From Trichosphaerium sp. ATCC 40318 (lineage: Eukaryota > Protista > Tubulinea): 64,000 nucleotides of DNA. Position numbers and translations under genes: made by a program. Positions 17,217 through 64,000 of this stretch are shown here, piece by piece; position 1 is the first letter of the stretch; every line of letters starts with the position of its first letter. The stretch lies in the NCBI GenBank assembly GCA_038496445.1, contig JALMLS010000447.1, positions 124,001 through 188,000 on the forward strand, in the 5' to 3' direction. The notes below the pieces were generated by a model, which searched no databases, had not been told where the DNA came from, and saw only the letters and a list, made by a program, of their open reading frames with translations.

Positions 17217-18210
17217 CACTTGTCTTGTTTTACACCATTGATGTAATTAAAGTGCTCCACCAATTAGTTATTGTAACGCCATTGCTTGTATTCTCCATCT
17301 AGTTTACCATTGATGTAATTAAAGTGCTTCATCTATTGGCCATTGTCATTCCATTCCTGGTATTTTCCATCTAGTTTACCATTAATGTAATTAAAGTGCA
17401 TCATCAGTTGGCCATTGTCATTCCATTCCTGGTATTTTCCATCTAGTTTTCCATTGATGTAATTACAATGCTCCATCAATTGGCCGTTGTTATACCATTC
17501 CTGGTATTTTCCATTTAGTTTACCATTGATGTAATTGCATTTCTCCTTCAATTGCCCATTGAAATGCCATTCTTTGTATTCTCCTTCCCATACACCTTTA
17601 ATATTAATAACGTGTACACATAATTGGCCATTGCGATGCCATCGCTTGTATTCTCCATCTAGTTTACCATTGATATAATTATAGTGCTCCATCAGTTGTT
17701 TATCGTCGATGTAATTACCATGCTCCATCAATTTGTTGTTGTGACGCCATTGCTTATATTCTCCATCTAGTTTACCATTGATGTAATTACAATGCTCCAT
17801 CAGTTGGCCATTGGAATACCATGCCTTGGATTCTCCATCTAGTATATCATTGATGTAATTACAATGCTCATTCAATCGGCCGGTGTAAAACCATCGCTTG
17901 CTTTCTCCTTCTAGTTTGCCATTACTATAATTACAATACTCAAGCAAGTTTCCATTTTCATGCCATGCCTTGCATTCTCCATGTCGTACACCATGTTTCC
18001 AGTATTGCTGCTTTACAAGCTTGTTATCAATTCTTTTGTGCCATTTTCCATGCTTGTTCATACCAGCATCGAACCTTGTGGTCATTGCTGTGTGTTTTGA
18101 TAAAACTGGCCAAATTAAATACGCAAATGGGTCTAAATCGATAATATCCAGTTGAATCTCAAACGGAAGGTTTAATAGATGGCAACCAACTGATTGTGTA
18201 TTAAATCTCT
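17217..18210 (-). pseudogene. F-box-like + MORN-variant (YwqK-like) repeat protein; 3' repeats interrupted by two in-frame stops
   Basis: About ten 24-aa/72-bp repeats of the form NGQLMEHCNYINGKLDGEYKxW. LLNLPFEIQLDII lies in frame upstream of the ORF Met. The repeats continue past TAG (17333) and TAA (~17268) to TGA (~17217). It may still encode a truncated protein. Confidence 0.8.
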
Positions 18211-31720: not shown

Positions 31721-32845
31721 GAAGTTAAGACTGGGAAGAAATCTACCATACATGGTATGATTCAGCATGTTTAATATTGAGGTGTTAGTGAAATATAGAT
31801 AGTGAGGTTCAACAACCTATATTCAATAGAATATTCATTTTAATCACATGACCTTGAAATTATTTATCGTAGTAGATTTGTTAGGTTGGTGTATTTTACT
31901 CGGATTATTGACATTACTCGAACCCAAACCATCCCTTGTGCATCATATTTAGTGTGGCGTTTATGTGAAATAGTGCAGCTTCGTACAAGCAAGTAAATGC
32001 TCACAGAGATGAACAAGACCAAATAAATGCAACCCAAAGTGAAAGGTAGTATATTAAACATACCAAGAACTGTGAGTCCACCAGTACATTGCTTTGGCAT
32101 TTTTAACTTCAAACCAACGCATCAAACGCTTACAGCATTGTAAGTTCATCGAGTGCTGCATGTGAAAGATGGGAATGAAGGGTGAGTACAGTTTCCTTAA
32201 TATGCCAAGCCCACCTTTTCCCCTTTGTACAGTTATTGGCTTTGACCATTGGTGTATGACATAAAGTTCATGTTTGGCGTGTATAGTGACAGTACTTGTA
32301 CAGACGTGGTGAATAGGCTTTGTCGCGTATGTTACAGCGATAATGAGGAGTACAGAGGCAAAGAGGAGTTGCGTTGTTAGTATGTCCGTCTGAATGTGAA
32401 CAAAAAGACACATAATTCCATTTTTGGCTTTGTGTTATATTGAACCAAAACAAGAAAGATTAACGTTTGTCAGTGTTTTAGTTTGTCATTACAAACCTTT
32501 TCCATACCTCATTTTATGGTAGTACAACATTTTTTTGTACTAAAACGAACAACGTGCTCACAGTGAATGAACCAAAAGTGGTACTGTCGTGTCTTTTTGT
32601 TCACATTCAGACTATCAATCTTTTTTTTTTTATCCACAATTCCAAGGTTTAAACAATACTTATTAAAATCCCCGTTTATTTATGGTTATATTACACTATA
32701 TCTACATTGGTATTTGTTCGTTTTGCGGGGTTATAGTTTTTTTTTTACTGAGTTGTTGCAAGAGCAAGAAAAACCTTTTTTTTTTCTCCCTTTTTTGGTG
32801 ATGTGGATGGTGATTTAAAGGGAAAAAAAATCATGGCTTTTGTGT

Positions 32846-35800
32846 TTACTCTACAAAACTATCTAATGCTCGGTCTTCAAATTGTGCATCTAGTCTATCG
32901 AATGGGGTATTGCTTTCGTTATCAGATGGTTCATATTTCGAGAACTTGAAATCATAATCCCAAATGTTCTGGACAACGTAATCTTCCCATTTACCGTCAA
33001 TGACGCCCTCTCCATTTATACCATTAGAAAGTATTTCTACTATTGGTTTCCAAGCAGTTTGTCCCAGAACACCTAAAAAAATCACGTGAGAAAAACGTGC
33101 AAAAGAGATAATAACGATTTTTAAGGAAAATTCAAAGAAAAAAAAGGAACGTACCATGTGGTTGTATCTGGTTGGATTTAGTGCTATGGAAGTACTTTGT
33201 TCTCATGTTCAAGTGACAAGTACTGTGTTTAGAGGACGAGAAACGGACTGAAATTCTATAGGTATCGGTGGTAACTTCAACACGGTGATTAGCTGCTCTG
33301 CTTCTCTTGATCTGTCCGTAAGCGAGCTTCTGCTTTTCACCAGCTTCTAAAGGCTTGTTGTTCAATTCAATACGTTGTGAACGGTTGTTACGGTCGCATG
33401 AAATGAACATTCTGTCCTTGCCTATTTAAATAAAGTAAGAATCGATCCAAAGTCTTGTCTTTGTTTTTTTTTTTTTTCCTTTGAAACGTACCGATAGTTA
33501 TACCGATTTGACCCATGTAAGTCTTTTTACTCTTTAGGCGGAGATCAGCGTTGACAAAGTACGAGTTTAGGACAAAGTGAGAGTCACTAATGATAGCATA
33601 GTACTTGTCAGGGAACGCGTGGAAGTCTAGAAGTTGAGGTAAGCGATGATTGCCTTGATGGTTTTTTTTTTTTCTTGTTTTTCCGTACCGAATTTTTGGC
33701 CGTTGAATCCGACAAAGTGAGGATCTCCAGAGATACCAGGATTGACACATCGGAAGGTGAATACGAATACTCTCTGTTGGTTCGTTGTAGTATTGCGTAG
33801 TGTTAGTGTCAATGTGATGGCTTGTTCTAAAAGAGAAGTGTAAGAAAAAAGAAAGAAAAAAAAAGAGTCGAGGTATTAAAGAATATCGTACGTGGTGCTA
33901 GCGTCACGTTTTGTGAGTTGAATATTGGTGCTGGACCGACAGTATCTGTGAACACTGATCCGTCAATCGAAAATTCAAAAGTGACTTCGTCTGCGTTAAC
34001 GGTTTCAACACGGACGGAGATGACGCTGTTTGGAAGGAGTTGTTTGTTCAAAGTCAATCCAGACTTAAGAAAAAAAAGTTAGTTTAAGTCAGACTCTAAG
34101 ACAAAAACAGTTTTGAAGCTCGCTTGAGTTCTTATACGTACAGGTGGTAGTGGGGTTACAACTATACCAGTTTCAGGGTTGAATATGAGAGGTGGTGGAA
34201 GTAGGTCAGGAACGGTTATGAGGCCAAAATCGATGGTTAGATCAGCGGATGGAAGATCACCTGTCCTGTGGTTGGCGCATGTGTAATCGAAGAATTGACC
34301 GTTTCCGAATATATCTAAGTTCTGGATAGCTGTAGCATCAGAGTCAATGCTGTCATCTCCACCTTGGTCTAATATGGTAGGAGAATATCCAGTGCCACTA
34401 GTAGAGGTGTAAGAAGAAGAAAATGTAAAACTCTAAAAATAGGTTTGACATACGATAAGTTGATGCAGATGATGTAATCTGTGTTAGGGTATATTCCATG
34501 TGTTGGAGTATCAAAAGTGTAGTTACCACTCGCTATAAGAGTGTAAATACATGATAAAGAACAAAAGAACAAAGGAAAGACTCAAAAAAGTTTCCAAGAA
34601 TATTTTAAGAAAGTTTGACTTACAATCTGTCGTGGTTGTGGCGTATACTACACCGTTGTTAAGGATAATAACATCGAGGCCTGTTAATCCTACATCTCCA
34701 ACATCTAATAAAGAATGTCAATTTTTTTTTTTTTGCTGATGTTTGTTGTTAGTACCTTGTAGACCGTCGCCGTTGATGTCAAGGAATACGAAATTACCAA
34801 TGACAACAGAATCTGGTAAGAAACCGAAATCAATCAGAACATTTGTATCATTATTAGGTGTTTGTGCAACAGCGCAAGCTGCAATATCATCATTAACACC
34901 ATCACCATCAGTATCAATAGGCCTGTGAAAATACAAAGTGAGTACTTGAAGAAAACCCAAAAAGAAATAATGAAGAAAAAAAACCACCAAGTCGTTTTTC
35001 GTTCTCTTCTTTTTTTTGGTTCATGGTTTTTGACGTACTGTGGGAAGCCCTTGGAATCTAGACCGATTGGTGCTGGTTGATTTGGTGGAGAAGGCCATAA
35101 CAGTGGGTTTGGACCGTAAGGTACGCAAACAGTGTATTCTGTGTTAGGATCAAGGTCTGTAAAGTTGTATCTACCATTAGGATCAGATCGAGTCGTGTTT
35201 ACAATGGTGTCATTGATGTATAGCAAGATAAGGACATCAGGTATACCAGTTTCACCCATGTCTAAAAATAACATTAGTAAACAACAACAGCAAAGGGCAC
35301 AAGAGGGGAAAGAGCGCCGAATAGGAAATTTTTTATGTTGTTTTGAAATAAACTTTTTTTAACACGTGCCTTGAATACCGTCTCCGTCATCGTCTCTAAA
35401 GATGAAATCTCCAAAAGATACACGTGGTGGTACAACACCAAAATCAATAGTTAGATCTGGTGTACCGTCAGTGGAGGTTGTGACTTCAGCGCATGAAGCT
35501 CTATCATTTGATCCGTCTTGGTCTAGATCAAAAGTAGTAACTTCAACACCGTTTGAGTCAAGTGCTGGGTCTCCTCCTGCGCCTGCGACTGGAATATTTG
35601 GGAAGAATCTTGTTCCAGTTACTGCGAATACATCTACACATATAGTGTAATTTCTGTTTCGTAGTATAGGAGGCGAGTCGAAGGTGTACTCTCCGTTTGG
35701 ATCGGTTGTTGTTGAATCGATAAGTGTACCAGTTTCATCAAAGATGAAAACTGGAATTCCAGGTTCTCCGGGTTCTCCAGGATCTTGAACGCCGTCACCG

Positions 35801-38800
35801 TTATCGTCTCTGTACACGCGATCTCCGATTATAGCTGGTGTTCCTCTGATGACACCGAAATCGATTGTGATATCGGTTCCGCCAGACTTAAGTAAAAGAG
35901 TTAAGTAAAGGTTTTCTTATGAAGTGGTTCGTACGTTTGGAGTCATTTCGGAGCTACAACTGAGTGTTGTTCCGGATACTAAGGCGCCATTCGAGTCTGT
36001 TGATGGTGTGCCTTGTCCTGTTGGACTTGGTGATCCAGAGAATCCCAAGGTGCTGAGATCGAGGCATACAAGTACTGGCATGTTTGGATTAAGGTTTGGC
36101 ACATTGTTGTTGGTCAATGTGTATGTGCCATCCACAAGAGTAGTGGTTCTTGTTAGTTCGGTTACACCGTCTGATGTGAATATTATAACTTCAGCGCCAG
36201 GTATACCAGGTTCGTTGTTATCTAAGAGGAAAAGTCAGAATCTTTGCAAGAAAAACAAAAAAAGTTTTGATAGAAAAGGGGTTACCTTGAACGCCGTTGT
36301 TATTGATATCATCAAAGACGACATCACCGATTGTGAATGGAATCAATGTAAATCCAAAATCGATATCTTCGTTAATAGTACCAGGTACGCCTGTTGGTAC
36401 ACGTTCGGCGCAAGAGAGACTATCAGGAGTTCCATCCATATCGACATCCAAAAGAGTATTTGTGAAAATACCGTTTGAATCTAAAGTTTCATCTCCTCCT
36501 TGGTTAACAGGTGAAGGAGCAACTGATAGACCTTCAATGACGACACATATAGTGACTTCAGTATTAGGTGGTAGTCCATCTGTTGTTGTGAATGTGTATT
36601 CTCCGTTAGGGTCTGTTGTTGTTCTATCAATGATTGTGTTCGTATCAGGATCGATAAGAAGGACATCAAGGTTAGGAATACCGCTCTCGCCTGGATCTAA
36701 AAAAAAAACCTTGGTTAGATATCACGTGATTGTTTTGATTTTTTTGATTTAGTTAATATTTACCTTGGACGCCATCGTTGTCTTCATCATCAAACACTCT
36801 GTCACCAATGGATACTGGTAGTGGTGGGTTGGTTTGGAATCCGAAATCGACGTTGTCATTTGTTTCACCAGGATTAGGGGAAACAACATCAACACATGAA
36901 AGAGCACCGCGTTGTGAGCCATCAGAGTCAATGTCATCTTTTTAAAATATTAGATTGGAGTAACACTAAAGTCATATATAAAGAACGTACCACTATCAGC
37001 GTTTGCTGTTGTAGGGAAGTTACCAACAGGAATTTCAACACAAACTGTGTATGGTGTGTTTGGTTCTACACCATCTGTATCTGTATCGAAAGAGTACATT
37101 CCGTTGTTGTCTGTTGTATCTTCTGCGACTGGTGTACCGTCTGTCAATGTTATGGTTACACGTACATTGTTCAATGGTGTATCACCAGCATCTAGAGAGA
37201 AGGTAAGAAATTAGAAAAGCAAAGAAAATAAAAAGTTGTTCGCAGTACCTTGGACGCCGTCTCCGTTTGTGTCCGTGAAGACGAGATCTCCGATCATGAC
37301 ATTATCTGGTTGGAATCCAAAGTCGGTCGTATCATCAACAGTATTTGGTAGTCCGGATCTTACAGGTGCGCAAGATACAAGTTCAGTACCGAAGGTAGCT
37401 TGTGTTGTTTCAAGACCGTCGGAATCTAATAGAAGAAAAAAGTTAGAATACAACAAATATCTCTTCACGGTATTGTCTTTTGAGCGTACCAATTATATCA
37501 TCAGTACCGGCACCAGTTGTTGTAACCTGTAGTCTAGGTACAGCTGATACGAATCTTACACAAACGACGTATTGGGTATCTGGTATTACGCCGCTGGTTT
37601 CATCGAATTCGTAGCTTCCATCTGGTCCTGTTGTCACTGTTGAAACAGGGGTGCCATCTGGTAGCAATAGCACGACTTCAAGACCAGGTATAGGAGTGTC
37701 AACAGGTGGGGCTAGGAAGAGATGTTACGAGTTTAAGATACGATGGTTAGTTGACGTACTGTTTAAGCCATCTCTGTCAGGATCTAAGAAGGTGTCACCT
37801 CCGATTGTTACTTGTGTAGGTGGAGGTGGTGTTGGCTCAAATCCAAAGTCAACTGTGTCATCGACTACACCAGCTGTAGGTGTTTCAATGGTAGTACAAC
37901 TGAGGCGTTCTGGTGTGCCTAAGAAGAGAAAATGAGTGAAAGTGTTCGTTTTTTTTTTTTCAGCTGAAAACTTTTTTTTGTCTTACCATCGCCTGTTACA
38001 TCAATGAATGTTTCGATACCGTCAGAGTCAACATCATCATCAATACCAGCGTTTGCAGGTATAGTTGGATCCATGCCTGTAGGTACTAGAGCACAGATTC
38101 TGAACATTGTTGTAGGCAAGAGTGCAGCTGTAGAAAAATTATAAGAAAGATGTAATAATAAGTTATGTATTCGTACGGAAGTTATCAGAGCTGATGGTAT
38201 ATGTACCGCCCGTTGTTGTGGTCTGAGCGATTGGGGTATCATCATTAATTGGTAAGACAAAGATAGGTACATTATCAAGAGGATTATCTCCAGGATCTAA
38301 TAAAAGAAGAAACAAAGTCAGCATGAAGTAAAATAAGAGAAAAAAAAAAAAAGAACAAGTTCGTTTTCTTCCTTGTTTGAGATGAGAGCGTACCTTGAAT
38401 ACCGTCTGAGTTTGTATCTTCGAATACAGTATCTCCAATAATAATAGGTGTTGGGTTAAATCCGAAATCGATTGTGTCATCAGTAGTACCAGGAGGACCT
38501 GAGGTAACATTTCCACAAGATAAGACTTGAGGACCTGATCCGATATCGAATATCAAAGGAGAACCATTTGAATCAGTGCTTGGGTTTCCTGTTGTCATTG
38601 ATGGTGAAGGTGTAACAGTAGGTACAATAACTGTTGGATCAATACAGACAGAGTAAGGTGTGTTTGGATCAACATCAGTAAACTCATATGTTCCGTCTGG
38701 TTGGGATATCGTTGTTCGTACTACAACACCGTTTTCATCAATAAGGTAGATAGGAACATTAGGTATTCCAGTTTCGCCAGGATCTAAAAAACAAGATTAG

Positions 38801-41800: not shown

Positions 41801-44800
41801 GTGTTCGGTTAAAGGCATAATTCCATCTGTTGTTGAGAAAGTGTATTCACCGTTAGGATCAGTTACATCACGTGCTATTTCCATGTTATCGCTTGTTCTG
41901 ATAACAACAACATTCTTTCCAGGTGCATTCGTATCTTGTGGGTCTAAAAGAGAGTATAAGAAAAGGAACAAGTCCACGCGAGAAAAAAAAAGTTAAGAAA
42001 GTTGAGGTGATTCTTACCTTGGATTCCGTCCGAGTTTGTATCGAAGAATACGCGATCACCGATGATTAAACTCAATGGTACAAAACCAAAGTCGATATCA
42101 ACATTATTAGAGCCAAGAGCAGGTGATATGATATCAACACAAGAAGCATCATCATCATTTCCATCTCCATCAAAATCGAATACAGATGAGATACCATCAG
42201 AGTCGATGGTATCATCACCACCAATATTCGGTGCAGTGGTTGTCTCTTGAGTGCGTACAGATGTACATACGCGGTATGCTGTATTTGGAAGAACACCTTC
42301 AGAAGTATCAAAGAGATAGTTTCCTGTTGGTGTTGTTGTTTCTCTGGCGATTTCTGTGGTTCCTTGAAGAAGAACAACAATTGCGTTTCCGATTGGTAGA
42401 TCACCAGCGCTTTGTGTTGAGCTTCTATCAACGTCAAGGAAGACAAAGTCTCCAATTGATACTGTTAGGACGTTGATAAAACCAAAGTCGTTTGAGAGGT
42501 CAATACCGCCGAGAGCAGGTGAAGTCTAAAACAAAAGTGTCAATAAAAAGTTGAACTAGTGATTTTTTTTGTCTTTGTACCATGTCGACACAAGATGCAT
42601 CTTCGTTAGTGCCATCACCATTAAAGTCAAAGAACATTGCTCTAAATACTCCATCTGAGTTTAAGCCATTATCGGATCCTTGGTTGGCAGCTGTGACTTG
42701 ATCTCCTGGTCGGATCGAAGTACAGATTGTGTAATCAGTTGAAGGAAGAACATTGTTTGTTGATGATGTGAACATGTAAATGCCATTCACATCAGTTGTT
42801 GTAGTGCTAATAACGCTTGAATCGCTTGTTAGCAAGAGAACGACAGCAACATTACCAATATTGGTATCCATTGGGTCTAGAAACAAAGTTAGAAAAGAGA
42901 TAACTTTAAGTTATAAGTGAATTCAATTAAGTTACCTTGGATGCCGTTACTGTCGATGTCAAAGAAGACACGATCACCAATGATGATTTCAGGGCTTTCT
43001 ATACCGAAATCGATAGTATCATCATCATTACCAGGAGGTGGAGAGGTGATCATAACACATGAGGCTGGATCAGGTGTGCCGTCCATGTTGAAGTCAAAAG
43101 TAGAAGGACTTCCGTCTGAGTCTAAGGTAGGATCTCCTGTTCCTCCCAAAGGTGAAGGTTCTTCTGTGGATTGGAGTTCGACACATATCGTGTAAGGTGT
43201 GTTTGGTTGAACTCCATCGGTTGGTGTATCAAAGGTGTACATACCATTAGGGTCAGTGGTTGTACGAGAAAGTTCAGTTCCATCATCTCGAATGATGACA
43301 ACTGTTCTCATTGGAACACCCATTTCTGGAGGATCTTGGATACCGTCTTCATCATTATCCATGAATACACGGTCTCCAATAGAAACAGGTTGTGGAATGA
43401 AACCGAAATCGTAATTAAGGTTTGTCATACCAGTATCAGGTGAGGTCTTTTGAAAAAAAACAGTTAGAAGAAAAAATAAACAAAAAAAAAGTTTCGGTAA
43501 AGAAAGCGTACAAAGTCAACGCAAGATACACGTTCAGCGACCATATCGATTGGATCAGTTAGGTCGATCATACTCAATGTACCATCAGAGTCAATAGTAC
43601 CATCTGAACCGGTCATTGGTGTAGTTACATCAAAACCGTCAGGGATTTGAGCGCAGATTGTGTAATCAGTGTTTGGATCAACACCATCGTTTGTATCAAA
43701 TGAATAGATTCCCATAACATTAGTTGTAGTCCTTGAAATGATTGTTCCTGCTGAGTTCAGGATAACGACAACATTGTTGTCTACATTAGTATCCATTGGA
43801 TCTTGAATACCGTTTCCATTAACATCAACAAAGACGCGATCACCAACAATCAAAAGAGGTGTTGTGATACCGAAATCAATCGTATCATCCATGTCACCAA
43901 GAACTGGACTTGTCTGTAATCAGTAGTTAGTATCTCTTCGATCTTGAAGTATGATAAGAAAGATTTGACTTACGATTGTTGCACATGAAGTTGTGACAGG
44001 TGCAGGTGTGTTGTCGATACCATCAGAGTCGATGGTGTCATCTCCTCCTTGGTTTGCCATTGTTGATAGCTCACCGGTTTGAAGAAGAACACAGATGGTG
44101 TATTGGGTACTTGGGAGAATACCATCTGCTGTTGTAAAGTTGTAAAGACCTGAACCGTCTGTAATATCAGTAGCGACTTGGACACCGTCACTAACTCGTG
44201 ATATAGTTACAGTACGACCCATAACTGGAAGGTCACCTCCATCTAAAGAAGGGTTAGAGAGGAGCGTATACTATATTGTCTTTTTGTTTTTTGTTCACGT
44301 GTTTTTGCCCAGCACGTGAATTTTGCAAAAAAAAGTGCTTCTTAACGTACCTTGAAGGCCGTTGTCGTTTATGTCAAAGAATACTCTGTCACCAACTTCA
44401 ATTGTTTCAGGAGCAACAGGAGCCTCAGTTGGAGGAGTAGTGGTTGGTGGTGCTGTTGGTATTATTTGGTCAATGAATCCAAAGTCGAAGGTGTTGTCGT
44501 TCACACCAGCAGAAGGAGAAGTCTGTAAAAAAATAGGTGAGTTGAGGAAAATAAAGTAAGTGCACTTACAATCATAACACAAGAAGCACGGTCAGGAGTG
44601 CCATCTCCATCAAGATCAATCATTGTTTCAGAACCATCAGAGTCAATGGTATCGTCTCCACCAAAGTTGGCAGTGATTGGATCTTGGGTTGCTGGTACTT
44701 GAACACAGATTTGGTAGTCTGTGTCTGGTAGTAGACCATCTGCAGTAGAGAACATGTAGTTGCCCATTGTATTGGTCATTGTGTTGGCAACTTCAACGCC

Positions 44801-50800: not shown

Positions 50801-53800
50801 AAGAGATCCATCAGAGTCAATGGTATCATCTCCTCCGATATCGGCAGTAACAGGTGTTTCAGTGCTCAAAACGAGAACACAGATCGTGTACTGAGTTGAA
50901 GGCATAACACCATCAGCTGTATCGAAAGAGTACATGCCCATGTTGTCTGTAGTTTCTCTATCAATAACCATGCCGTTGCCTGTGTCTGTGATTGACACAT
51001 CTCTGTTTACAACAGGTAGATCTCCAACACCTTGGAACAAAAAATTAGATCATCACAAACACAAAATAGAAGTGAAGTACTTTGAGTGTTATCATTGTCC
51101 AAGTCAAAGAAAACAAAGTCTCCAATGTTGACAGTAAGTGATACAAATCCAAAGTCGTAGTTGAGGTTCATCATGTTGACTGAAGGTGAAGTCTAAAAAA
51201 ATACAATTAGAATTTGTGAAATACAAGAAAAAGTAATGACAAAATAACGTACAAAGTCAACACAAGATACACGATCGCCCATGCCATCTCCATCAATATC
51301 AACAGCACGTTCGTCACCATCAGAGTCAATAGTTCCGTCCATACCAGCTCCAGTGGCTGTTGGGTCGTTACCTACTGGGACAAGAGCACAGATAGTGTAC
51401 ATCGTGTCAGGTAATAGGCCATCTGTTTCGTCAAAGCCATAGATACCACTCATATCTGTTGTATCTGTTGCAACAACAGCTCCACCTTGGATAAGTGCAA
51501 CAAGTACACCGTTGATTCCGGTTTCGCCCGTTGAGAGACCATCGTTGTCAGAGTCGGTAAACACAAAGTCTCCAACTGAAACGGTACCAGCGACAATACC
51601 AAAGTCAATTGTATCATCTGTATTACCAGCGGTTGGAGAGGTGATGTCAACACATGAGGCGCGCTCTGGAGTACCATCGCCATCAAAGTCAAATGTAGTT
51701 ATTGTACCGTCTGAGTCAGTGGCAGCAGTACCCATTCCTGTTTGTGCAGGAACATCAAGAGCGTCAAGTTCAATACAAATGGTGTAATCCGTGTTTGGTA
51801 CAAGACCATCTGTTTCATCGAAAGTGTATTCGCCGTTCATATCAGTGACATCAGTGGCGATAGGAGTGACGTCATTGCGAGGGGTAATCACAACTGTTCT
51901 TCCTGGTACATCTGCGTCGCCACCGTCTTGTACACCGTCATTGTTGTTGTCCATGAATACACGGTTTCCAATTGTGACAGGTTGATCAACGAAACCAAAA
52001 TCAATTGTAATGTCGTTGACACCAAGTGCAGGTGATGTCTGTAATTAAAAGTTAGCGTTGTACTCACAATAAAAAGTATACTTACAATATCGATACAAGA
52101 AGCACGGTCAGGGGTGCCATCACCATCAAGATCAATCATTGTTTCAGAACCATCAGAGTCAATGGTGTCATCTCCACCAAAGTTGGCAGTGATTGGATCT
52201 TGGGTTGCTGGGACTTGGGCGCATACTTGGTAGTCTGTGTCTGGAAGTACACCATCACCAGTTGAGAACATGTAGTTGCCCATTGGGTTGGTCATTGTGT
52301 TGGCAACTTCAATGCCCATTGAGTCGAAGAGTACGACAAGTACGTTTTCGATTGGACTGTCACCAGCGTCTATTGGAATATAACACATTAACAAACATAT
52401 TTTAAGTGAGTTTATAGATTACCTTGCACGTTGTCTCCATTTTCATCAACGAAGACAAAGTCACCGATGAATTGCATTGGCGTGTTAATACCAAAGTCAT
52501 TATCAAGGTCTGCGTTACCAATAGTTGGACTCATCTGTAGAGAAGTGGTTAGTTAAAAAACTATTTAAAATCTACTTTTGATCCGTACAATAGTAACACA
52601 AGAAGCGCGATCAGGAGTGCCATCACCGTCAACATCAACCATTTGAAGAGATCCATCAGAGTCAAGGGTATCATCTCCTCCGACATCGGCAGTGACAGGT
52701 GTTTCAGTACTTAAGATGAGTACACAGATCGTGTATTGAGTTGAAGGCATAACACCATCAGCAGTATCAAAAGAGTACATGCCCATGTTGTCTGTAGTTT
52801 CTCTATCGATAACCATGCCGTTACCTGTGTCTGTGATTGACACATCTCTGTTTACAACAGGTAGATCTCCACCACCTTGGAACAAAAAGTTAGATCATCA
52901 CAAACACAAAATAGAAGTGAAGTACTTTGAGTGTTATCACTGTCCAAGTCAAAGAAAACAAAGTCTCCAATATTGATAGTAAGTGATACAAATCCAAAGT
53001 CGTAGTTGAGGTTCATCATGTTGACTGAAGGTGAAGTCTAAAAAAATACAATTAGAATTTGTGAAATACAAGAAAAAGTATTGACAAAATAACGTACAAA
53101 GTCAACACAAGATACACGATCAGGTGTGCCGTCTCCATCAATGTCGACCATACGTTCGTCACCATCAGAGTCAATGGTGCCGTCCATACCAGCTCCAGTG
53201 GTAGTTGGGTCGTTACCTGCTGGAACTTGAGCACAGATGGTGTACATCGTGTCAGGTAATAGGCCATCTGTTTCATCAAAACCATAGATACCACTCATAT
53301 CTGTTGTATCTGTTGCAACAACAGCTCCACCTTGGATAAGTGCAACAAGTACACCGTTGATACCGGTTTCGCCGGTTGAGAGACCATCGTTGTCAGAGTC
53401 GGTAAACACAAAGTCTCCAACTGAAACAGTACCAGCGACAATACCAAAGTCAATTGTATCATCAGTATTACCAGCGGTTGGAGAGGTGACATCAACACAA
53501 GAGGCGCGATCAGGAGTACCATCGCCATCAAAGTCAAAGGTAGTTATTGTACCGTCTGAGTCAGTGGCAGCTGTACCCATTCCTGTTTGAGCAGGGACAT
53601 CAAGAACGTCAAGTTCAATACAGATGGTGTAATCTGTGTTTGGTACAAGACCATCTGTTTCGTCGAAAGTGTATTCGCCGTTCATGTCAGTAACATCGGT
53701 AGCGACAGGAGTGACATCATTGCGAGGGGTAATCACAACTGTTCTTCCTGGTACGTCTGCGTCACCACCGTCTTGTATACCATCGTTGTTGTTGTCCATG

Positions 53801-56800
53801 AATACACGGTTACCAACACTCACTGGTTGATCGATAAATCCAAAGTCAATTGTAACATCGCTTATGCCAGTAGCAGGGGACGTCTGTTGCACAAGTTAGA
53901 AGTTAAGTAAAAAATAATAAAAGACTTACTATCATAACACAAGAAGCACGGTCATTCATGCCATCTCCATCAAGATCAATCATTGTTTCAGAACCATCAG
54001 AGTCGATGGTGTCATCTCCACCAAAGTTGGCAGTGATTGGATCTTGGGTTGCTGGGATTTGAGCACATACTTGGTAGTCTGTGTCTGGAAGTAGACCATC
54101 ACCAGTTGAGAACATGTAGTTGCCCATTGGGTTGGTCATTGTACTGGCAATTTCAACATCCATTGAGTCGAAGAGTACAACGAGTACATTATCAATTGGA
54201 GTGTCACCAGCGTCTAAAAAATAGAGTTAGCGCTTATGAAGTATTTCTTGAATGATAGTACCTTGAACATTATCTCCATTTTCATCAATAAAGACAAAGT
54301 CACCGATGAATTGCATTGGTGTATTGATACCAAAGTCATTATCGAGGTCAGAGTTACCAATGGTTGGGCTTGTCTGTAAAATGGTCAGCATGTAAGACAG
54401 CTAATAAAGATTGGTAACATACGATATCAACACATGAAGCGCGATCAGGAGTGCCATCACCATCTACATCGACCATTTGAAGAGATCCATCAGAGTCAAG
54501 GGTATCATCTCCTCCGATATCAGCAGTGACAGGTGTTTCAGTGCTTAAAACGAGAACACAGATCGTGTATTGAGTTGAAGGCATAACACCATCAGCTGTA
54601 TCGAAAGAGTACATGCCCATGTTATCTGTAGTTTCTCTATCGATAACCATGCCGTTACCTGTGTCTGTGATTGATACATCTCTGTTTACAACAGGCATAT
54701 CTCCAGCACCTTAAAATACAATGTTAATACTTGTGATATTTAAAAACTTTATAAGCTCACTTTGAGTGTTGTCACCGTCCACGTCAAAGAAGACAAAGTC
54801 TCCAATGTTGACAGTAAGTGGTACAAAACCGAAATCATAGGTAGGGTTCATCATGTTGATTGAAGGTGAGGTCTAAACAATTATAAATAATCAAAGTCTA
54901 CAAACAAAAAAAAACATGACATACGAAATCAACGCAAGATACACGTTCAGCCATGCCACTTCCAATATCGACCATACGTTCGTCACCATCAGAGTCGATG
55001 GTGTCGTCCATACCAGCTCCAGTGGCTGTTGGGTCGTTACCTGCTGGAACTTGAGCGCAAATGGTGTACATCGTGTCAGGTAATAGGCCATCTGTTTCAT
55101 CAAAACCATAGATACCACTCATGTCTGTCACATCTGTTGCAATAACTGTTCCACCTTGGATAAGTGCAACAGTTATACCGTTGATACCAGTTTCGCCAGT
55201 TGAGAGACCATCATTATCAGAGTCGGTAAACACAAGGTCTCCAACAGATACGGTACCAGCAACAATACCAAAATCGATTGTGTCGTCTGTACCACCTCCA
55301 TTTGGAGAGGTGATATCAACACATGAGGCGCGCTCTGGAGTACCATCGCCATCAAAGTCAAAGGTAGTTATTGTACCGTCTGAGTCAGTGGCTGCAGTAC
55401 CCATTCCTGTTTGAGCAGGAAGGTCAAGAACGTCAAGTTCAACACAGATGGTGTAATCCGTGTTTGGTACAAGACCATCTGTTTCGTCGAAAGTGTATTC
55501 ACCGTTCATGTCGGTAACATCAGTGGCGATAGGAGTGACGTCATTGCGAAGGGTAATCACAACTGTTCTTCCTGGTACGTCTGCGTCGCCACCATCTTGT
55601 ACACCGTCGTTGTTGTTGTCCATGAATACACGGTTTCCAATTGTGACAGGTTGATCAACGAAACCAAAATCAATTGTAATATCGTTGACACCAGCGTTAG
55701 GTGATGTCTGTAAAGATGACAGAGTTAGAAAGTTTCTGAGTTTAACAAAAAGGTTACATGACGTACAATCATAACACATGAAGCACGATCAGGAGTGCCA
55801 TCACCATCAAGATCAATCATTAGTTCAGAACCATCAGAGTCGATGGTGTCATCTCCGCCGAAGTTGGCAGTGATTGGATCTTGGTTTGTTGGAACTAAGG
55901 CACATACTCGGTAGTCTGTGTCTGGTAGTAGACCATCACCAGTTGAGAACATGTAGTTGCCCATTGGATTGGTCATTGTGTTGGCAACTTCAACGTCCAT
56001 TGAGTCGAAAAGTACGACAAGTACGTTTTCGATTAGAATGTCTGTACCGTCTATTGTAACGTAATGTAAGTACTTAACAGATAAATATAAAAAAGTAAGG
56101 TTACCTTGAACATTGTCTCCATTATCATCAACAAAGACAAAGTCACCAATAAATTGCATTGGTGTAACAATACCGAAGTCGTTGTCATTATCAGTATTGC
56201 CAAGTGTTGGACTCATCTAGATGATAACCATTAGACATGTATATACGAATAGTTTAGACGTACAACATCAACACATGAAGCGCGATCAGGAGTGCCATCA
56301 CCATCGACATCAAACATTTGAAGAGATCCATCAGAGTCAAGGGTATCATCTCCTCCAAAATCAGCAGTAACAGGTGTTTCAGTACTTAAGATGAGTACAC
56401 AGATCGTGTACTGAGTTGAAGGCATAACACCATCAGAAGTATCAAAAGAGTACATGCCCATGTTGTCTGTGGTTTCTCTATCGATAACCATGCCGTTGCC
56501 TGTGTCTGTGATTGACACATCTCTGTTTACAACAGGAATATCTCCAATTCCTTAAAATAACGTGTAAGAAAAGTGACTTTTTGAAATACACGTGAAGAAA
56601 CACGTGTTGAATTTTTATCATACCTTGAACATTATCACCGTTATCGAAGAAGACAAAGTCACCAATGATAACAGTTTGTGGTACAAATCCGAAATCGTAA
56701 TTAGGATTCATCATGTTTACAGATGGAGAAGTCTACAAGAGTTAATACTAGAATTTTTTCGCATGTTTTAAAAAAGCAACGTACAAAGTCAACGCAAGAT

Positions 56801-59800
56801 ACACGATCATCCATACCATCTACATCAATATCGACAGTACGTTCGTCACCATCAGAATCAATGGTATTGTCCATACCAGCGCCAGTGGCTGTTGGGTCTG
56901 TATTTGCTGGAACAAGAGCACAAATGGTGTACATTGTATCAGGTTCAAGACCATCTGTTTCATCAAAACCATAGATACCACTCATATCTGTTGTATCTGT
57001 TGCAACAACAGCTCCACCTTGGATAAGTGCAACAAGTACACCATTGATTCCGGTTTCACCAGTTGAAAGACCATCATTGTCAGAGTCGGTAAACACAAGG
57101 TCTCCAACAGATACGGTACCAGCGACAATACCAAAGTCAATTGTATCATCAGTATTACCAGCGGTTGGAGAGGTGATGTCAACACAAGAAGCACGATCAG
57201 GAGTGCCATCGCCATCAAAGTCAAAGGTAGTTATTGTACCGTCTGAGTCAGTGGCAGCAGTACCCATTCCTGTTTGTGCAGGGACATCGAGAGCTTCGAG
57301 TTCAACACAGATGGTATAATCCGTGTTTGGAATTAAACCATCAGATGTGTCGAAAGTGTATTCGCCGTTCATGTCAGTGACATCGGTAGCGACAGGAGTG
57401 ACGTCATTGCGAAGGGTAATCACAACTGTTCTTCCTGGTACGTCTGCGTCACCACCATCTTGTATGCCATCATTGTTGTCATCTCTGAATACACGGTTTC
57501 CGACAGTGACTGTTTGATCGATAAATCCAAAGTCAATTGTCAAATCATTAACACCAACATTAGGTGACGTCTTATAAAATGTTAGTGAAAAAAAACCTTT
57601 AAATTAACGTACAATCATAATACATGAAGCACGATCAGGGGTGCCATCTCCATCAAGATCAATCATTAGTTCAGAACCATCAGAGTCAATGGTATCGTCT
57701 CCGCCGAAGTTGGCAGTGATTGGGTCTTGGTTTGCTGGGACTAAGGCGCAGACTCGGTAGTCTGTGTCTGGAAGTACGCCATCGGTAGTTGTGAACATGT
57801 AGTTGCCCATTACATTGGTCATTGTGTTGGCAACTTCAACATCCATTGAATCGAAAAGTACAACAAGCACATTTTCAATTGGATTGTCTCCACCATCTTG
57901 TGTAATATTAATCAAAATATTTCATACTATTTTGTAATTTCATACCTTGAACGTTATCTCCATTTTCATCAATAAAGACAAAGTCACCGAGGAATTGATT
58001 TGGTGTATTAATACCAAAATCATTATCGAGGTCAGAGTTGCCAAGTGCTGGACTCATCTGTTCAAACGTGGTTAGTAAAAATCTTGTAGTGTTTTATTGA
58101 GCGTACGATATCAACACATGAAGCGCGATCAGGAGTGCCATCACCATCTACATCGACCATTTGAAGAGATCCATCAGAGTCAAGGGTATCATCTCCACCG
58201 ATATCAGCAGTAACAGGTGTTTCAGTGCTCAAAACGAGAACACAGATCGTGTATTGAGTTGAAGGCATAACACCATCAGCTGTATCAAAAGAGTACATGC
58301 CCATGTTGTCTGTAGTTTCTCTATCGATAACCATGCCGTTGCCTGTGTCTGTGATTGATACATCTCTGTTTACAACAGGCATATCTCCAGCACCTTAGAA
58401 TAAAAAGTTAGAAAATAACGAATACATGATGAAACAAAGGCGTACTTTGGGTGTTGTCACTGTCCAAGTCGAAGAAAACGAAGTCTCCGATGTTGACAGT
58501 GAGTGTAACAACAAAACCGAAATCATAGTCAGGGTTCATCATGTTGATTGAAGGTGAGGTCTAATACAAATTTTAGAATAATATTATAAGGATATTGTAA
58601 AAGTGAACGTATTGAGAAATTTCAAAAAGCAACGTACAAAGTCAACACAAGATACACGTTCAGCCATGCCACTTCCAATATCGACCATACGTTCGTCACC
58701 ATCAGAATCAATGGTGTCATCCATACCAGCGCCAGTGGCTGTTGGGTCTGTATTTGCTGGAACTTGAGCACAAATGGTGTACATTGTGTCAGGTAATAGG
58801 CCATCTGTTTCATCAAAACCATAGATACCACTCATATCTGTCATATCTGTTGCGACAACAGTTCCACCTTGGATAAGTACAACAGTTATACCGTTGATAC
58901 CAGTTTCGCCAGTTGAGAGACCATCATTATCAGAGTCGGTAAACACAAGGTCTCCAACAGATACGGTACCAGCAACAATACCAAAGTCAATTGTATCGTC
59001 TGTAGCACCTCCATTTGGAGAGGTGATATCAACACATGAGGCACGCTCTGGAGTACCATCGCCATCAAAGTCGAATGTAGTTATTGTACCGTCTGAGTCA
59101 GTGGCAGCTGTACCCATTCCTGTTTGAGCAGGAACATCAAGAACGTCAAGTTCAATACAGATGGTGTAATCCGTGTTTGGTACAAGACCATCTGTTTCGT
59201 CGAAAGTGTATTCGCCGTTCATGTCAGTGACATCGGTAGCGACAGGAGTGACATCATTGCGAAGGGTAATCACAACTGTTCTGCCTGGTACGTCTGCGTC
59301 ACCACCGTCTTGTATACCGTCATTGTTGTTGTCCATGAATACACGGTTACCGACGCTGACTGGTTGATTGACAAATCCAAAGTCAATTGTCAAATCATTA
59401 ACACCAGCGTTAGGTGAAGTCTTTATCATAAAAGTTAGAAAAGTGTCCAAGAATTATTTTCAAATTATCAACGTACAATCATAACACAAGAAGCACGATC
59501 ATCCATGCCATCTCCATCAAGGTCAATCATTAGTTCAGCACCATCAGAGTCAATGGTATCATCTCCACCAAAGTTGGCAGTGATTGGATCTTGGTTTGCT
59601 GGGACTTGGGCACAGACTCGGTAGTCTGTGTCTGGAAGCAATCCATCGGTTGTAGAGAACATGTAGTTGCCCATTGCGTTGGTCATTGTATTGGCAACTT
59701 CAACGTCCATTGAATCGAAGAGTACGACAAGTACGTTGTTAATTTCAGTGTCGCCACCATCTGTAAAAAGTAGAGTAAGAAAAGGGAAAGTGATTTTTTA

Positions 59801-62800
59801 AACTAAGACAGCATAGCAAAAAAAATAGTACCTTGAACATTATCTCCATTTTCATCAATAAAGACAAAATCACCAATAAATTGAGCTGGTGTATTAATAC
59901 CAAAGTCGTTGTCGAGGTCTGAGTTGCCAAGTGTTGGACTCATCTAGAGGAAATAGTGTTAGAAAGTCACCCAAACAGTTGTAGACATACGATATCAACA
60001 CAAGAAGCGCGATCAGGAGTGCCATCACCATCAACGTCGACCATTTGAAGAGATCCATCAGAGTCGATGGTATCATCTCCTCCAAAATCAGCAGTGACAG
60101 GTGCCTCAGTGCTTAAAACGAGAACACAGATCGTGTATTGAGTTGAAGGCATAACACCATCAGCAGTATCGAAAGAGTACATGCCCATGTTATCTGTGGT
60201 TTCTCTATCGATAACCATGCCGTTACCTGTGTCGGTGATTGATACATCTCTGTTTACAACAGGCATATCTCCAGCACCTTAAAATACAACGGTAAGTACT
60301 TAAATAACAAAGTAAAAGTTGAAGGCATACTTTGAGTGTTGTCACTGTCCAAGTCAAAGAAGACAAAGTCTCCAATATTGACAGTCAAAGGTACAAAACC
60401 GAAATCATAGTCAATATTCATCATATTGATTGAAGGTGAGGTCTAAAGAACAGGAAGCATAAGTAAAAAGAGAAAAGTTGGTACAACGCAGAAACGTACA
60501 AAGTCGACGCAAGATACACGTTCAGCCATGCCACCTCCAATATCAACCATACGTTCGTCACCATCAGAGTCGATGGTGTCGTCCATACCAGCGCCAGTGG
60601 CTGTTGGGTCTGTATTTGCTGGAACTTGAGCACAAATGGTGTACATTGTGTCAGGTAATAGGCCATCTGTTTCATCAAAACCATAGATACCACTCATATC
60701 AGTCATATCTGTTGCGACAACAGCTCCACCTTGGATAAGTACAACAGTTATACCGTTGATACCAGTTTCGCCAGTTGAGAGACCATCGTTATCAGAGTCG
60801 GTAAAGACAAGGTCTCCAACTGAAACAGTACCAGCGACAATACCAAAGTCAATTGTATCGTCTGTAGCACCACCATTTGGAGAGGTGATGTCAACACATG
60901 AGGCACGTTCAGGAGTACCATCGCCATCAAAGTCGAATGTAGTTATTGTACCATCTGAGTCAGTGGCAGCTGTACCCATTCCTGTTTGAGCAGGGACATC
61001 AAGAACGTCAAGTTCAATACAGATGGTGTAATCCGTGTTTGGCACAAGACCATCTGTTTCATCGAAAGTGTATTCGCCGTTCATGTCAGTGACATCGGTA
61101 GCGATAGGAGTGACATCATTGCGAAGGGTAATCACAACTGTTCTTCCTGGTACGTCTGCGTCACCACCGTCTTGTATACCGTCATTGTTGTTGTCCATGA
61201 ATACACGGTTACCGATGCTGACTGGTTGATTGACAAATCCAAAGTCAATTGTCAAATCATTAACACCAGCGTTAGGTGAAGTCTTTATCATAAAAGTTAG
61301 AAAAAGTGTGCGATAATTATTTTTCAAATTATCAACGTACAATCATAACACATGAAGCACGGTCAGGAGTGCCATCTCCGTCAAGATCAATCATTAGTTC
61401 AGAACCATCAGAGTCAATGGTATCATCTCCACCAGAGTTGGCAGTGATTGGATCTTGGTTTGCTGGTACTTGGGCACATACTCGGTAGTCTGTGTCTGGA
61501 AGCAATCCATCGGTTGTAGAGAACATGTAGTTGCCCATTACATTGGTCATTGTATTGGCAACTTCAACGTCCATTGAGTCGAAAAGTACGACAAGTACGT
61601 TGTTAATTTCAGTGTCGCCACCATCTGTAAAAAGTAGAGTAAGAAAAGGGAAAGTGATTCTTTAAACTGAGACAGCATAGCAAAAAAATAGTACCTTGAA
61701 CGTTGTCTCCATTTACATCAATAAAGACAAAGTCACCGATAAATTGAGCTGGCGTGTTGATACCAAAATCATTATCGAGGTCAGAGTTGCCAAGTGTTGG
61801 ACTCATCTGTTGTGAATGTGGTTAGTAAAAATCGTAGTATTTTATATTGAGCGTACGATATCAACACATGAAGCACGATCAGGAGTGCCATCACCATCTA
61901 CATCGACCATTTGAAGAGATCCATCAGAGTCAATGGTATCATCTCCTCCAAAATCAGCAGTGACAGGTGCTTCAGTGCTCAAAACGAGAACACAGATCGT
62001 GTATTGAGTTGAAGGCATAACACCATCAGCTGTATCGAAAGAGTACATGCCCATGTTGTCTGTAGTTTCTCTATCGATAACCATGCCGTTACCTGTGTCT
62101 GTGATTGAAACATCTCTGTTTACAACAGGCATATCTCCAGCACCTTAAAATACAACGGTAAGTACTTAAATAACAAAGTAAAAGTTGGAGGCATACTTTG
62201 AGTGTTGTCACTGTCCAAGTCAAAGAAAACGAGGTCTCCGATGTTGACAGTGAGTGTAACAACAAAACCGAAATCATAGTCAATATTCATCATATTGATT
62301 GAAGGTGAGGTCTAAAGAACAGGAAGCATGAGTAAATATAGAAAAGTTGGTACAACACAGAAACGTACAAAGTCAACGCAAGATACACGTTCGGCCATGC
62401 CACCTCCAATATCGACCATACGTTCATCACCATCAGAATCAATGGTGTCATCCATACCAGCGCCAGTGGCTGTTGGGTCTGTATTTGCTGGAACTTGAGC
62501 ACAAATGGTGTACATTGTGTCAGGTAATAGGCCATCTGTTTCGTCAAAACCATAGATACCACTCATGTCTGTCATATCTGTTGCGATAACTGTTCCACCT
62601 TGGATCAGTGCAACAGTTATGCCGTTGATACCAGTTTCGCCAATTGAAAGACCATTGTTATTAGAGTCGGTAAACACAAGGTCTCCAACTGAAACAGTAC
62701 CAGCGACGATACCAAAGTCAATGGTATCGTCTGTAGTACCACCATTTGGAGAGGTGATATCAACACATGAGGCACGCTCTGGAGTACCATCGCCATCAAA

Positions 62801-64000
62801 GTCAAAGGTAGTTATTGTACCGTCTGAGTCGGTGGCTGCTGTACCCATTCCTGTTTGTGCAGGGACATCAAGAACGTCAAGTTCAATACAAATGGTATAA
62901 TCTGTGTTTGGCACAAGACCATCTGTTTCATCGAAAGTGTATTCGCCGTTCATGTCGGTGACATCGGTAGCGATAGGAGTGACATCATTGCGAAGGGTAA
63001 TCACAACTGTTCTTCCTGGTACGTCTGCGTCACCACCGTCTTGTATACCGTCATTGTTGTTGTCCATGAATACACGGTTTCCAACACTGACTGGTTGATT
63101 GACAAATCCAAAGTCAATTGTCAAGTCATTAACACCAGCATTAGGTGAGGTCTTTATCATAAAAGTTAGAGAAAGTTCAAGAATTATTTTCAAATTATCA
63201 ACGTACAATCATAACACATGAAGCACGGTCAGGAGTGCCATCTCCATCAAGATCAATCATTAGTTCAGCGCCATCAGAGTCAATGGTATCATCTCCACCA
63301 GAGTTGGCAGTGATTGGATCTTGGTTTGTTGGTACTTGGGCACATACTCGGTAGTCTGTGTCTGGAAGTAATCCATCGGTTGTAGAGAACATGTAGTTGC
63401 CCATTGCGTTGGTCATTGTGTTGGCAACTTCAACGTCCATTGAGTCGAAAAGTACGACAAGTACGTTGTTAATTTCAGTGTCGCCTCCATCTGTAAAAAG
63501 TAGAGTAAGAAAAGGGAAAGTGATTCTTTTAACTAAGACAGACGAAAAAATGATAAGATCAAGAAATAGTACCTTGAACGTTGTCTCCATTTTCATCAAC
63601 AAAGACAAAGTCACCAATAAATTGAGCTGGTGCATTGATAATACCAAAATCGATTGTATCGTCAGTGCCACCACCATTTGGAGAGGTGATGTCAGCACAT
63701 GAGGCGCGCTCTGGAGTACCATCGCCATCAAAGTCGAAAGTAGTTATTGTACCATCAGAATCAGTAGCTGCGGTACCCATTCCTGTTTGAGCAGGAAGGT
63801 CAAGAACGTCGAGTTCAATACAAATGGTGTAATCTGTGTTTGGAATTAAACCATCTGTTTCGTCGAAAGTGTATTCGCCGTTCATGTTGGTTACATCGGT
63901 AGCGATAGGAGTGACGTCATTGCGAAGGGTAATCACAACTGTTCTTCCTGGTACATCTGCGTCACCGCCATCTTGAATACCATCGTTGTTGTTGTCCATG
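32846..64000 (-). CDS. Giant SdrD B-like repeat protein (~62 domains in the window, roughly 7,500-8,000 aa, 5' end outside the window) with a C-terminal GDPH VWD/Root-cap/ITIH-C-like domain
   Basis: Each ~120-130 aa unit follows the SdrD B pattern (I/V)GD(R/F)VFxDx(D/N)xDGxQ...V.L....TTTD.NG.Y.F...P.T.Y.IC...T....G.DD.IDSDG...TIDFG. Short introns fall at recurring positions. The C-terminus reads ISGDPHFVGFNGQKF|DFHAFPDKYYAIISD...TYMGQIG...PH|GVLGQT...GVIDGKWEDYVV...FKFSKY, stop at 32846. Confidence 0.9.
33717..33728 (-). other. GD|PH putative autocatalytic Asp-Pro cleavage site
   Basis: Codons gga gat cct cac at the start of the terminal domain. The same motif is cleaved in mucin VWD domains, RGM proteins and ITIH heavy chains (DPHF). 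Confidence 0.7.
44480..64000 (-). repeat. Intragenic tandem array: ~10 copies of a ~1.85 kb four-domain unit (A-B-C-D)
   Basis: The A-domain MDNNNDG marker recurs at ~46301, 48237, 50109, 51954, 53799, 55623, 57488 (variant), 59337, 61199, 63067 and 63999. Confidence 0.95.

Follow-up and report, generated by a model that had tools for sequence, protein, structure and literature searches.

We analysed a window of 64,000 nucleotides (nt) from Trichosphaerium sp. ATCC 40318 (assembly GCA_038496445.1, contig JALMLS010000447.1, positions 124,001 to 188,000 of the forward strand); all coordinates are positions in this window. Positions 32846-64000 hold the 3' part of a single, intron-rich eukaryotic gene on the minus strand, which runs off the window at 64000. 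Our dynamic-programming model comprises 91 exons with 25,699 coding nt and ends in a TAA stop at 32846-32848. The encoded 8,566 aa are a lower bound, since the 5' end is open, and correspond to a protein of 902 kDa with an isoelectric point (pI) of 4.05, 15% Asp and 128 Cys. This giant protein consists of a long array of SdrD_B-like domains, which are of the Ig-like type, a Pro-rich linker, a beta-rich segment and a terminal domain that opens with the motif GDPH. In the order of the protein, followed by the end of the transcript, the features are:

34214..64000, minus strand: array of 62 SdrD_B-like domains (~132 aa, Asp-rich, ~2 Cys each), aa 1-8230, open at the 5' end (Pfam; repeat hidden Markov model, HMM).
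34142..34213, minus strand: Pro-rich linker of 24 aa (VPDLLPPPLIFNPETGIVVTPLPP), aa 8231-8254 (spliced translation).
33738..34063, minus strand: beta-rich segment of ~87 aa, aa 8255-8341, in two exons separated by the intron 33827-33891 (spliced translation; junction 33826/33892 in RNA).
33717..33728, minus strand: GDPH motif, aa 8345-8348 (invariant in the aligned family; aligns with the GDPH sites of the FCGBP VWD domains).
32849..33722, minus strand: C-terminal domain of DPH/Root-cap type, VWD superfamily (270 bits against the family profile A1; RNA junctions; homologue model).
32660..32848, minus strand: stop codon and 3' untranslated region (UTR) of ~190 nt, with the poly(A) addition site near 32660 (RNA contigs).

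The gene model allowed no in-frame stops, required GT/AG borders and scored codons by log-odds trained on the long open reading frames (ORFs) of the repeats; its last four exons were set by reading the sequence and then checked against RNA junctions. The introns (89 GT-AG and one GC-AG) measure 40-116 nt, with a median of 55 nt, and mostly start with GTACGT or GTAAGT. RNA contigs from four public RNA runs were compared with positions 32650-38600; the exon borders above 38600 are those of the model, in which the border of the exon starting at 63532 appears slightly off. Single contigs (X1, 2,583 nt; X2, 8,389 nt; X3, 1,942 nt) span the terminal exons and the last repeats. Their junctions lie at 33072/33155, 33421/33492, 33626/33689, 33826/33892 and 34063/34142 in the terminal part, and at 34397/34454, 34532/34624, 34704/34756, 34922/35039, 35886/35935, 36221/36286 and onward further into the repeats, so that the splice junctions of the array are RNA-confirmed from 34397 to 38600. 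All RNA junctions agreed exactly with the model, save for one intron that proved to be GC-AG. This intron (35262-35369, minus strand) is the only one of its kind among the 90, and all three RNA runs that cover it agree; its donor sits 9 nt from the GT-only placement, and the correction adds three residues.

At the other end of the transcript, a run of 23 T forms a loose end at 32660 in X3, which corresponds to poly(A) on the coding strand, and the RNA contigs pass through the stop and end at 32660-32776. Because the RNA contigs join the last repeats to the terminal exons and end in poly(A), the GDPH-domain exons and the SdrD_B repeats belong to one mRNA, of which these exons form the genuine 3' end. 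The initial annotation of this locus had left room for two other arrangements: that the terminal exons (32846-33830) belong to a separate transcript, or that an alternative last exon encodes a transmembrane segment or a glycosylphosphatidylinositol (GPI) signal. The first is ruled out by the joining contigs. As regards the second, no such exon is present in the three RNA runs, and their contigs finish with poly(A) at ~32660. The 90 modelled introns, those within 32650-38600 being RNA-confirmed, rule out a bacterial contaminant. Two contigs were set aside. One X3 contig, of low depth, links 33680 to 34995; the two stretches that it joins are T-rich intron sequence, separated by 11 extraneous letters, and we took it as an assembly artefact; one X2 contig diverges at 32815, inside the 3' UTR, and was taken as an allelic or alternative UTR, not a coding exon.

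Next, we examined the array. Pfam SdrD_B (PF17210, gathering score 29.7) matched three repeat exons with 108.5, 64.1 and 76.5 bits (E 1e-17 to 3e-31), and our own repeat HMM resolved exactly 62 full-length domains of ~132 aa over aa 1-8230, in agreement with the roughly 62 domains initially counted. The repeat consensus includes GDxVFxDxNxDGxQD, TDxxGxYxF, DSDG, DGDGxxDRxSC and iDFGF, with acidic motifs that by sequence are of the calcium-binding DxDxDG type. The nearest database relatives of the repeat unit (two matches) are a metagenome protein (39% identical) and a protein of a Lewinellaceae bacterium (35% identical), and no full-length homologue of the giant protein was found in the protein database searches. 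The distal 40 domains are organised as ten tandem four-domain super-repeats of ~1.85 kb (44523-63151), which, aligned by script, share 73-94% DNA identity including their introns and reach 93-94% in pairs 1/2 and 6/7; the proximal 22 domains are more diverged. Because this identity extends to the introns, the sequence of the super-repeats indicates recent unequal crossing-over, and their copy number in the assembly may be uncertain. Tandem Repeats Finder reported nothing on the array because the repeat period exceeds 500.

Downstream of the array, the order of linker, beta-rich segment and a domain starting GDPHFVG and containing HGVLGQT is the one initially described, with a beta-rich segment of ~87 aa instead of ~100. 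This segment ends in a putative beta1 strand (RVFVFTFRC), and a 57 aa piece of it had no Pfam match. The sequence around the site reads ...RVFVFTFRCVNPGISGD/PHFVGFNGQKFDFHA..., where the slash marks the predicted scissile bond between the Asp codon at 33725-33723 and the Pro codon at 33722-33720, and GDPH occurs only once in the whole in-window protein. The exons of the C-terminal domain are 33826-33689, 33626-33492, 33421-33155 and 33072-32849. The piece predicted to follow the Asp-Pro bond has 220 aa and 25.5 kDa and is basic (pI 8.8, compared with ~4 for the stalk). Within the terminal domain are DFHA, two family-conserved Cys, FSSSKHSTCH and HGVLGQT (aa 8491), and the protein closes with an acidic, hydrophilic tail (...DRALDSFVE). 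Pfam gave no match on the single terminal exons because the pieces are too short and HG/VLGQT is split by an intron.

The C-terminus carries none of the usual anchors. A sortase-type LPxTG is absent from the protein, the loose pattern LP.[TSA]G matching only LPPSG in the Pro-rich linker, and we found no hydrophobic C-terminal tail, transmembrane-like segment or GPI-type tail; the most hydrophobic 19-residue windows are beta-strands of the repeats. The earlier statement that the protein lacks an anchor was borne out for the C-terminus and does not extend to the whole protein, whose N-terminus lies beyond 64000.

The family of the terminal domain was collected by searching the 88 aa exon 33156-33419 against 1.84 billion representative proteins, which gave 20 homologues. 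The best of them, the MMETSP transcript P0001, is 53% identical to the whole spliced domain of the giant protein. Pfam, PDB, AlphaFold2 (AF2) and Foldseek analyses were run on homologues that are 35-53% identical, and local HMMER on the window's own spliced domain. Alignment A1 contains the invariants G-D-P-H, G, D-F-H-G, N, F, T-Y, C, R, F-S-x-S, S-x-C-H, H-G-x-L-G, G and Y. The spliced domain of the giant protein scores 270 bits against the A1 profile and keeps every invariant but the Gly of DFHG: it reads DFHA, against DFHG in 16 of 16 aligned relatives, with the DFH codons at 33675-33683 and an intron-spanning Ala codon (33626+33689-33690). G-D-P-H is invariant in 16/16 and 18/18 aligned members, although overall identity is only 20-53%. 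The invariant His of DFHG, at Asp+14, stands where FCGBP D10 has a Gln that forms a hydrogen bond with the catalytic Asp (PMC10880436). GDPH stands 143-157 residues before HG(V/I)LG, and 51-87 residues separate that His from the C-terminus.

In every complete member the module lies at the extreme C-terminus, and what precedes it varies. P0006, from Trichosphaerium sp. ATCC 40318 itself (MMETSP0405), is complete, with a signal peptide and an animal-type haem peroxidase (PF03098, E 2e-119). P0004 carries CBM96; P0035, an ENA metagenome protein of 399 aa, carries Big_9/cadherin-like adhesin-type repeats and follows the same logic of a repeat rod with a GDPH end. P0010/P0024, from the transcript of another organism, combine an SdrD_B fragment with a domain of 36% identity and have the same architecture as the giant protein. 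Several members carry other, unassigned N-terminal domains. Signal peptides are present in the complete members P0001, P0004, P0006, P0009, P0016 and P0022, and a hydrophobic C-terminal tail in none of the listed family members. The giant protein is probably secreted too, its own N-terminus and signal peptide lying beyond the window. Because the module is always C-terminal, behind signal peptides and with no other anchor seen, its distribution in the sequences fits a portable C-terminal processing or anchoring device.

Two further observations concern the ends of the module. In the giant protein, a single Cys precedes the scissile Asp by 8 residues (RCVNPGISGD/PH; codon 33744-33746, minus strand). 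A Cys occupies a similar position in P0013 and in no other member; it is near the beta1 Cys of FCGBP and has no conserved partner, and in the giant protein it may be free or in an intermolecular bond. At the opposite end, most protist members finish, after an acidic stretch, in small residues plus E or an aromatic residue (GWAE, ADAE, GGAE, GMAE, AGGE, ASGE, GAAY, GAAW, AASY, AASF). Such short end motifs occur in P0005, P0007, P0010, P0011, P0013, P0015, P0016, P0018, P0022, P0025 and others, and that of the giant protein is SFVE (32849-32875). The shared end motif could be a sorting or recognition signal.

To what fold does the module belong? The AF2 model of P0001:242-464 had a predicted local distance difference test score (pLDDT) of 80.7 and a predicted TM-score (pTM) of 0.81. 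Foldseek matched it in the PDB to the VWD domains of MUC2, MUC5AC, VWF and FCGBP (probability 1.00, E down to 5.5e-6) and to RGMB. Against the Swiss-Prot part of the AlphaFold database (AFDB), the top matches were 21 entries of ITIH1/2/3/5, aligned from about residue 650 to the C-terminus (TM 0.55-0.65, E ~1e-6, 17-22% identity); from the UniProt entries, we take this stretch to be the pro-domain, whose start is the DPHF cleavage site. Among AFDB clusters and the ESM Atlas, the best matches were plant Root cap (PF06830) proteins (TM 0.66-0.72), followed by protist proteins annotated as VWFD domain-containing, whose N-terminal parts include subtilisin, Apple and DUF305. The profiles point the same way. 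The family profile matches a Klebsormidium Root cap family protein (E 3e-14, 96% domain coverage), against which the domain of the giant protein directly scores 32 bits, and against the PDB its start, GDPHfvGfxGqkfDFHG, matches the GDPH sites of the FCGBP VWD domains position by position.

The Pfam models gave a graded picture. VWD (PF00094, gathering 22.9) matched 13 of 16 homologues, with P0017 at 30.8, P0010 at 23.3, P0013 at 22.9 (at the cut-off) and P0001 at 18.6 (below it). ITI_HC_C (PF06668, gathering 27) stayed below its cut-off, matching two of the 16 members (best E 2.3e-4; P0009 18.9 bits, E 0.0012), and PF06830 (gathering 27) was not reached either: one homologue of 16 was hit at E 0.06, and the Klebsormidium protein itself scores 19.4 bits, the 57-position model being tuned to land plants. 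Of the profile matches anticipated at the outset, SdrD_B was found, VWD in part of the homologues, and ITI_HC_C and Root_cap only below their gathering scores; the structural comparison, run on the homologue P0001, returned the VWD, ITIH C-terminal and Root cap folds, and the suggested analogy with ITIH and VWD proteins found support in homology, in fold matches and in the alignment with FCGBP. By sequence and profile comparison, we assign the terminal domain as a protist member of the DPH/Root cap family with a VWD-superfamily fold: a beta-sandwich with the invariant GDPH at its start, followed by the HGVLGQT sub-domain. On the modelled structure, the ITIH C-terminal pro-domain is the nearest of its relatives to have been characterised biochemically.

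This relationship suggests what the end-domain may do. In VWD domains, GDPH is cleaved autocatalytically between Asp and Pro; the Asp and the His are required, a Gln at Asp+14 that contacts the Asp contributes, and a His-to-Asn change blocks cleavage of FCGBP (PMC10880436). In ITIH3, ITIH5 and ITIH6, GDPH falls between the first and second strands of a VWD-like sandwich that is not annotated (PMC10880436). Cleavage yields a reactive Asp anhydride, which hydroxyls, amines or water can attack: in ITIH3 an ester forms between the Asp and GalNAc of chondroitin sulfate, favoured by the low pH of the late secretory pathway, and in FCGBP the anhydride is merely hydrolysed, no cross-link forms and the fragments stay disulfide-linked (PMC8267560). 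The giant protein has the same motif, the same fold and the same position at the chain end as ITIH. By homology with ITIH heavy chains and GDPH-type VWD domains, the Asp side chain would attack the Asp-Pro bond in the secretory pathway, the basic 25 kDa end-domain would be cut off as a pro-domain, and the stalk would be left with a C-terminal Asp anhydride. A glycan or matrix partner might capture this anhydride through a hydroxyl or an amine, or it would simply be hydrolysed. Capture would fix that end of a few-hundred-nm stalk in the cell coat or matrix, and the module would be a portable C-terminal processing and anchoring device that ends unrelated secreted proteins in related protists. 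We favour this sequence of self-cleavage followed by capture or hydrolysis tentatively, as quite possible but short of probable. Taken by its parts, and judged from the characterised relatives, cleavage at GD/PH of the giant protein is rather probable, and covalent capture, once the bond is cut, is doubtful.

Several points weigh against this reading. FCGBP is a precedent for hydrolysis of the anhydride without a cross-link (PMC8267560). The Ancylonema ice-binding protein AnIBP ran on reducing SDS gels (SDS-PAGE) as a spot of ~55 kDa, the size of the uncleaved protein, although the spot was not identified by mass spectrometry (PMC10796529; bioRxiv 10.1101/2024.01.29.577848). Because plant Root cap proteins often have little N-terminal part and start with DPR, the DPH domain, by comparison with them, probably does something in its own right, for instance binding or oligomerisation. 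The giant protein has DFHA where the family has DFHG; the beta1 strand upstream of GDPH is only weakly predicted, and the two halves might stay together non-covalently; and a conventional N-terminal anchor beyond 64000 is possible. Finally, what stood of the tether proposed in the initial annotation, described there as self-cleaving and self-anchoring, is its architecture, its single transcript and the GDPH-bearing domain of VWD type. Cleavage and coupling, in the giant protein as in the family, we infer from homology, and the acceptor glycan is hypothetical.

The ~ten residues before GDPH are variable, with Pro-rich linkers in P0004, P0007, P0011 and P0022, and no Cys upstream of GDPH is conserved among the aligned members, both family-conserved Cys lying downstream, inside the domain. 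Because this upstream part is variable, often Pro-rich and without a conserved Cys to retain the fragments, its sequence makes release after the cut likely, as in ITIH and unlike mucins, FCGBP and RGM. The same features argue against a different reading, in which the end-domain, cleaved or not, would stay as a functional tip that the rod projects as a binding, lectin-like or oligomerising head, with attachment to the cell through the N-terminus beyond the window or through partners, and in which any cleavage at GD/PH would only stabilise the fold, as in FCGBP. In several members a Pro-rich linker immediately precedes the motif, the extra Cys of the giant protein would find no partner left, and a module that stands strictly at the C-terminus, behind enzymes and repeats unrelated to one another, is what one would sooner expect of a sorting or processing device than of a ligand-binding head that these proteins share. 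In its favour, GDPH cleavage stabilises the VWD domain of FCGBP without any cross-link, VWD and RGM domains are interaction domains, and plant Root cap proteins consist mostly of the domain with a short N-terminal region, for which an activity of its own would be expected. The low-confidence beta1 strand (in the extended homologue model, a short strand upstream of GDPH with pLDDT ~50), the Cys 8 residues before the Asp, near the FCGBP beta1 position, and the N-terminus outside the window are also compatible with it. We consider such a tip rather unlikely.

The possibility that the domain is not cleaved at all, GDPH being structural and the uncleaved beta-sandwich serving multimerisation or adhesion of a secreted matrix protein, seems improbable to us. 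It would explain the full-length size of the AnIBP spot, it agrees with the oligomerisation proposed for the DPH domain by its describers (PMC10796529; bioRxiv 10.1101/2024.01.29.577848), and the land-plant Root cap members, which start DPR instead of DPH and of which many have a short N-terminal part (PMC10796529; bioRxiv 10.1101/2024.01.29.577848), indicate that the family tolerates loss of a residue whose change to Asn blocks cleavage in FCGBP. It fits poorly with the invariance of G-D-P-H in all aligned protist members at 20-53% identity and with the cleavage seen in all GDPH-bearing VWD domains that the cited papers tested (PMC10880436, PMC8267560); note that the AnIBP spot, again, lacks identification by mass spectrometry.

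The composition of the rod brings in a last alternative, a secreted calcium-binding scaffold of matrix or biomineral, in which the acidic rod would sit in coat, test or mineral and be cross-linked by its GDPH end. The covering of Trichosphaerium carries calcareous spicules, this amoeba is the source of most of the end-domain's closest homologues, and a protein with 15% Asp, a pI of ~4 and 62 domains of calcium-binding type would suit such a role. The calcium sites of SdrD_B domains are structural in known cases, and we regard a scaffold of this kind as very unlikely.

A broader version of the preferred reading, self-cleavage with capture or hydrolysis, would make the DPH/Root-cap domain the protist and plant equivalent of the ITIH pro-domain: a C-terminal anchoring cassette of ancient origin, spread across the eukaryotes, that cleaves itself and whose Asp anhydride would be transferred to hydroxyls of coat, wall or matrix glycans. 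SdrD_B rods, peroxidases, lectin modules and ice-binding domains would then be fixed covalently without sortase, GPI or transglutaminase. We put this forward as a speculation with little probability; if true, it would give a biochemical function to roughly 2,000 uncharacterised plant root cap proteins. If the end-domain of the giant protein alone cleaves and couples its stalk to a glycan, a eukaryote would have an enzyme-free means of covalent fixing to the cell coat, with an outcome like that of bacterial sortase anchoring and the chemistry of ITIH. It would also join plant and algal root cap/DPH proteins, animal GDPH-type VWD domains and ITIH-glycosaminoglycan esters, which the DPH and GDPH papers keep apart. 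Regardless of mechanism, the SdrD_B array of this locus is among the largest seen in spliced eukaryotic genes, and the analysis documents a family of protist secreted proteins with a common C-terminal module.

Elsewhere in the window, an intronless ORF of 250 aa with MORN-like repeats (YxNGKLDGEYKxW...) lies at 17333-18085 on the minus strand and is unrelated to the giant gene.

How does the giant protein compare with known systems? With the staphylococcal Sdr proteins (SdrC/D/E, ClfA-type MSCRAMMs) it shares a rigid stalk of tandem calcium-binding SdrD_B domains (PF17210). Those proteins carry 2-5 B repeats together with an SD-repeat region, and their C-terminus bears an LPXTG sortase anchor, whereas the giant protein has at least 62 repeats, a spliced eukaryotic gene and a GDPH domain at its C-terminus, with no sortase-type LPxTG. 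The ITIH heavy chains share the C-terminal beta-sandwich of ~230-250 aa that starts at (G)DPHF, and in ITIH as in the protist family nothing conserved upstream of the motif holds the fragments together. The passenger differs, being a VIT-VWA body in ITIH and the SdrD_B array here, in a host without a known chondroitin or bikunin partner, and the HGVLGQT root cap sub-domain sets the protist and plant family apart from ITIH. GDPH-type VWD domains (FCGBP, MUC2 D4, MUC5AC, RGM, MUC4, SUSD2, BMPER) share with the family the VWD fold, the GDPH...FDG...DF.G start and the Asp and His required for autocatalysis. The family differs from them in lacking a conserved beta1 Cys with its interfragment disulfide and the C8/TIL/E modules, in being terminal and not embedded, in the His that replaces the Gln contacting the catalytic Asp, and in its extra Root_cap sub-domain.

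The layout itself is closest to that of the streptophyte DPH/Root cap proteins (PF06830), including AnIBP, which have a signal peptide, a variable N-terminal part and a C-terminal domain of ~250-280 aa running from DPH to HG(V/I)LGQT. For streptophytes, published work describes a DPH domain at the C-terminus of proteins whose N-terminal parts vary, and its BLAST matches were said to be all streptophyte; neither report mentions GDPH cleavage, von Willebrand/VWD domains or ITIH (PMC10796529; bioRxiv 10.1101/2024.01.29.577848). A full-text literature search found no paper containing both 'GDPH' and 'root cap'. The initial annotation knew of no protein with this architecture, a claim that has to be narrowed, as the C-terminal DPH layout is known in streptophytes and SdrD_B occurs with the module in P0010/P0024. 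Already known are the SdrD_B, VWD/GDPH, ITIH and Root cap/DPH families, and the variable N-terminus followed by DPH for streptophytes only. What is new is that the domain, reported so far from streptophytes, is present in this genome and in transcripts of amoebozoan-type and other protists, and that it is fused here to a rod of 62 SdrD_B domains. New as well is the explicit link that homology suggests between the Root cap/DPH proteins, the GDPH-bearing VWD domains and the pro-domain of ITIH.

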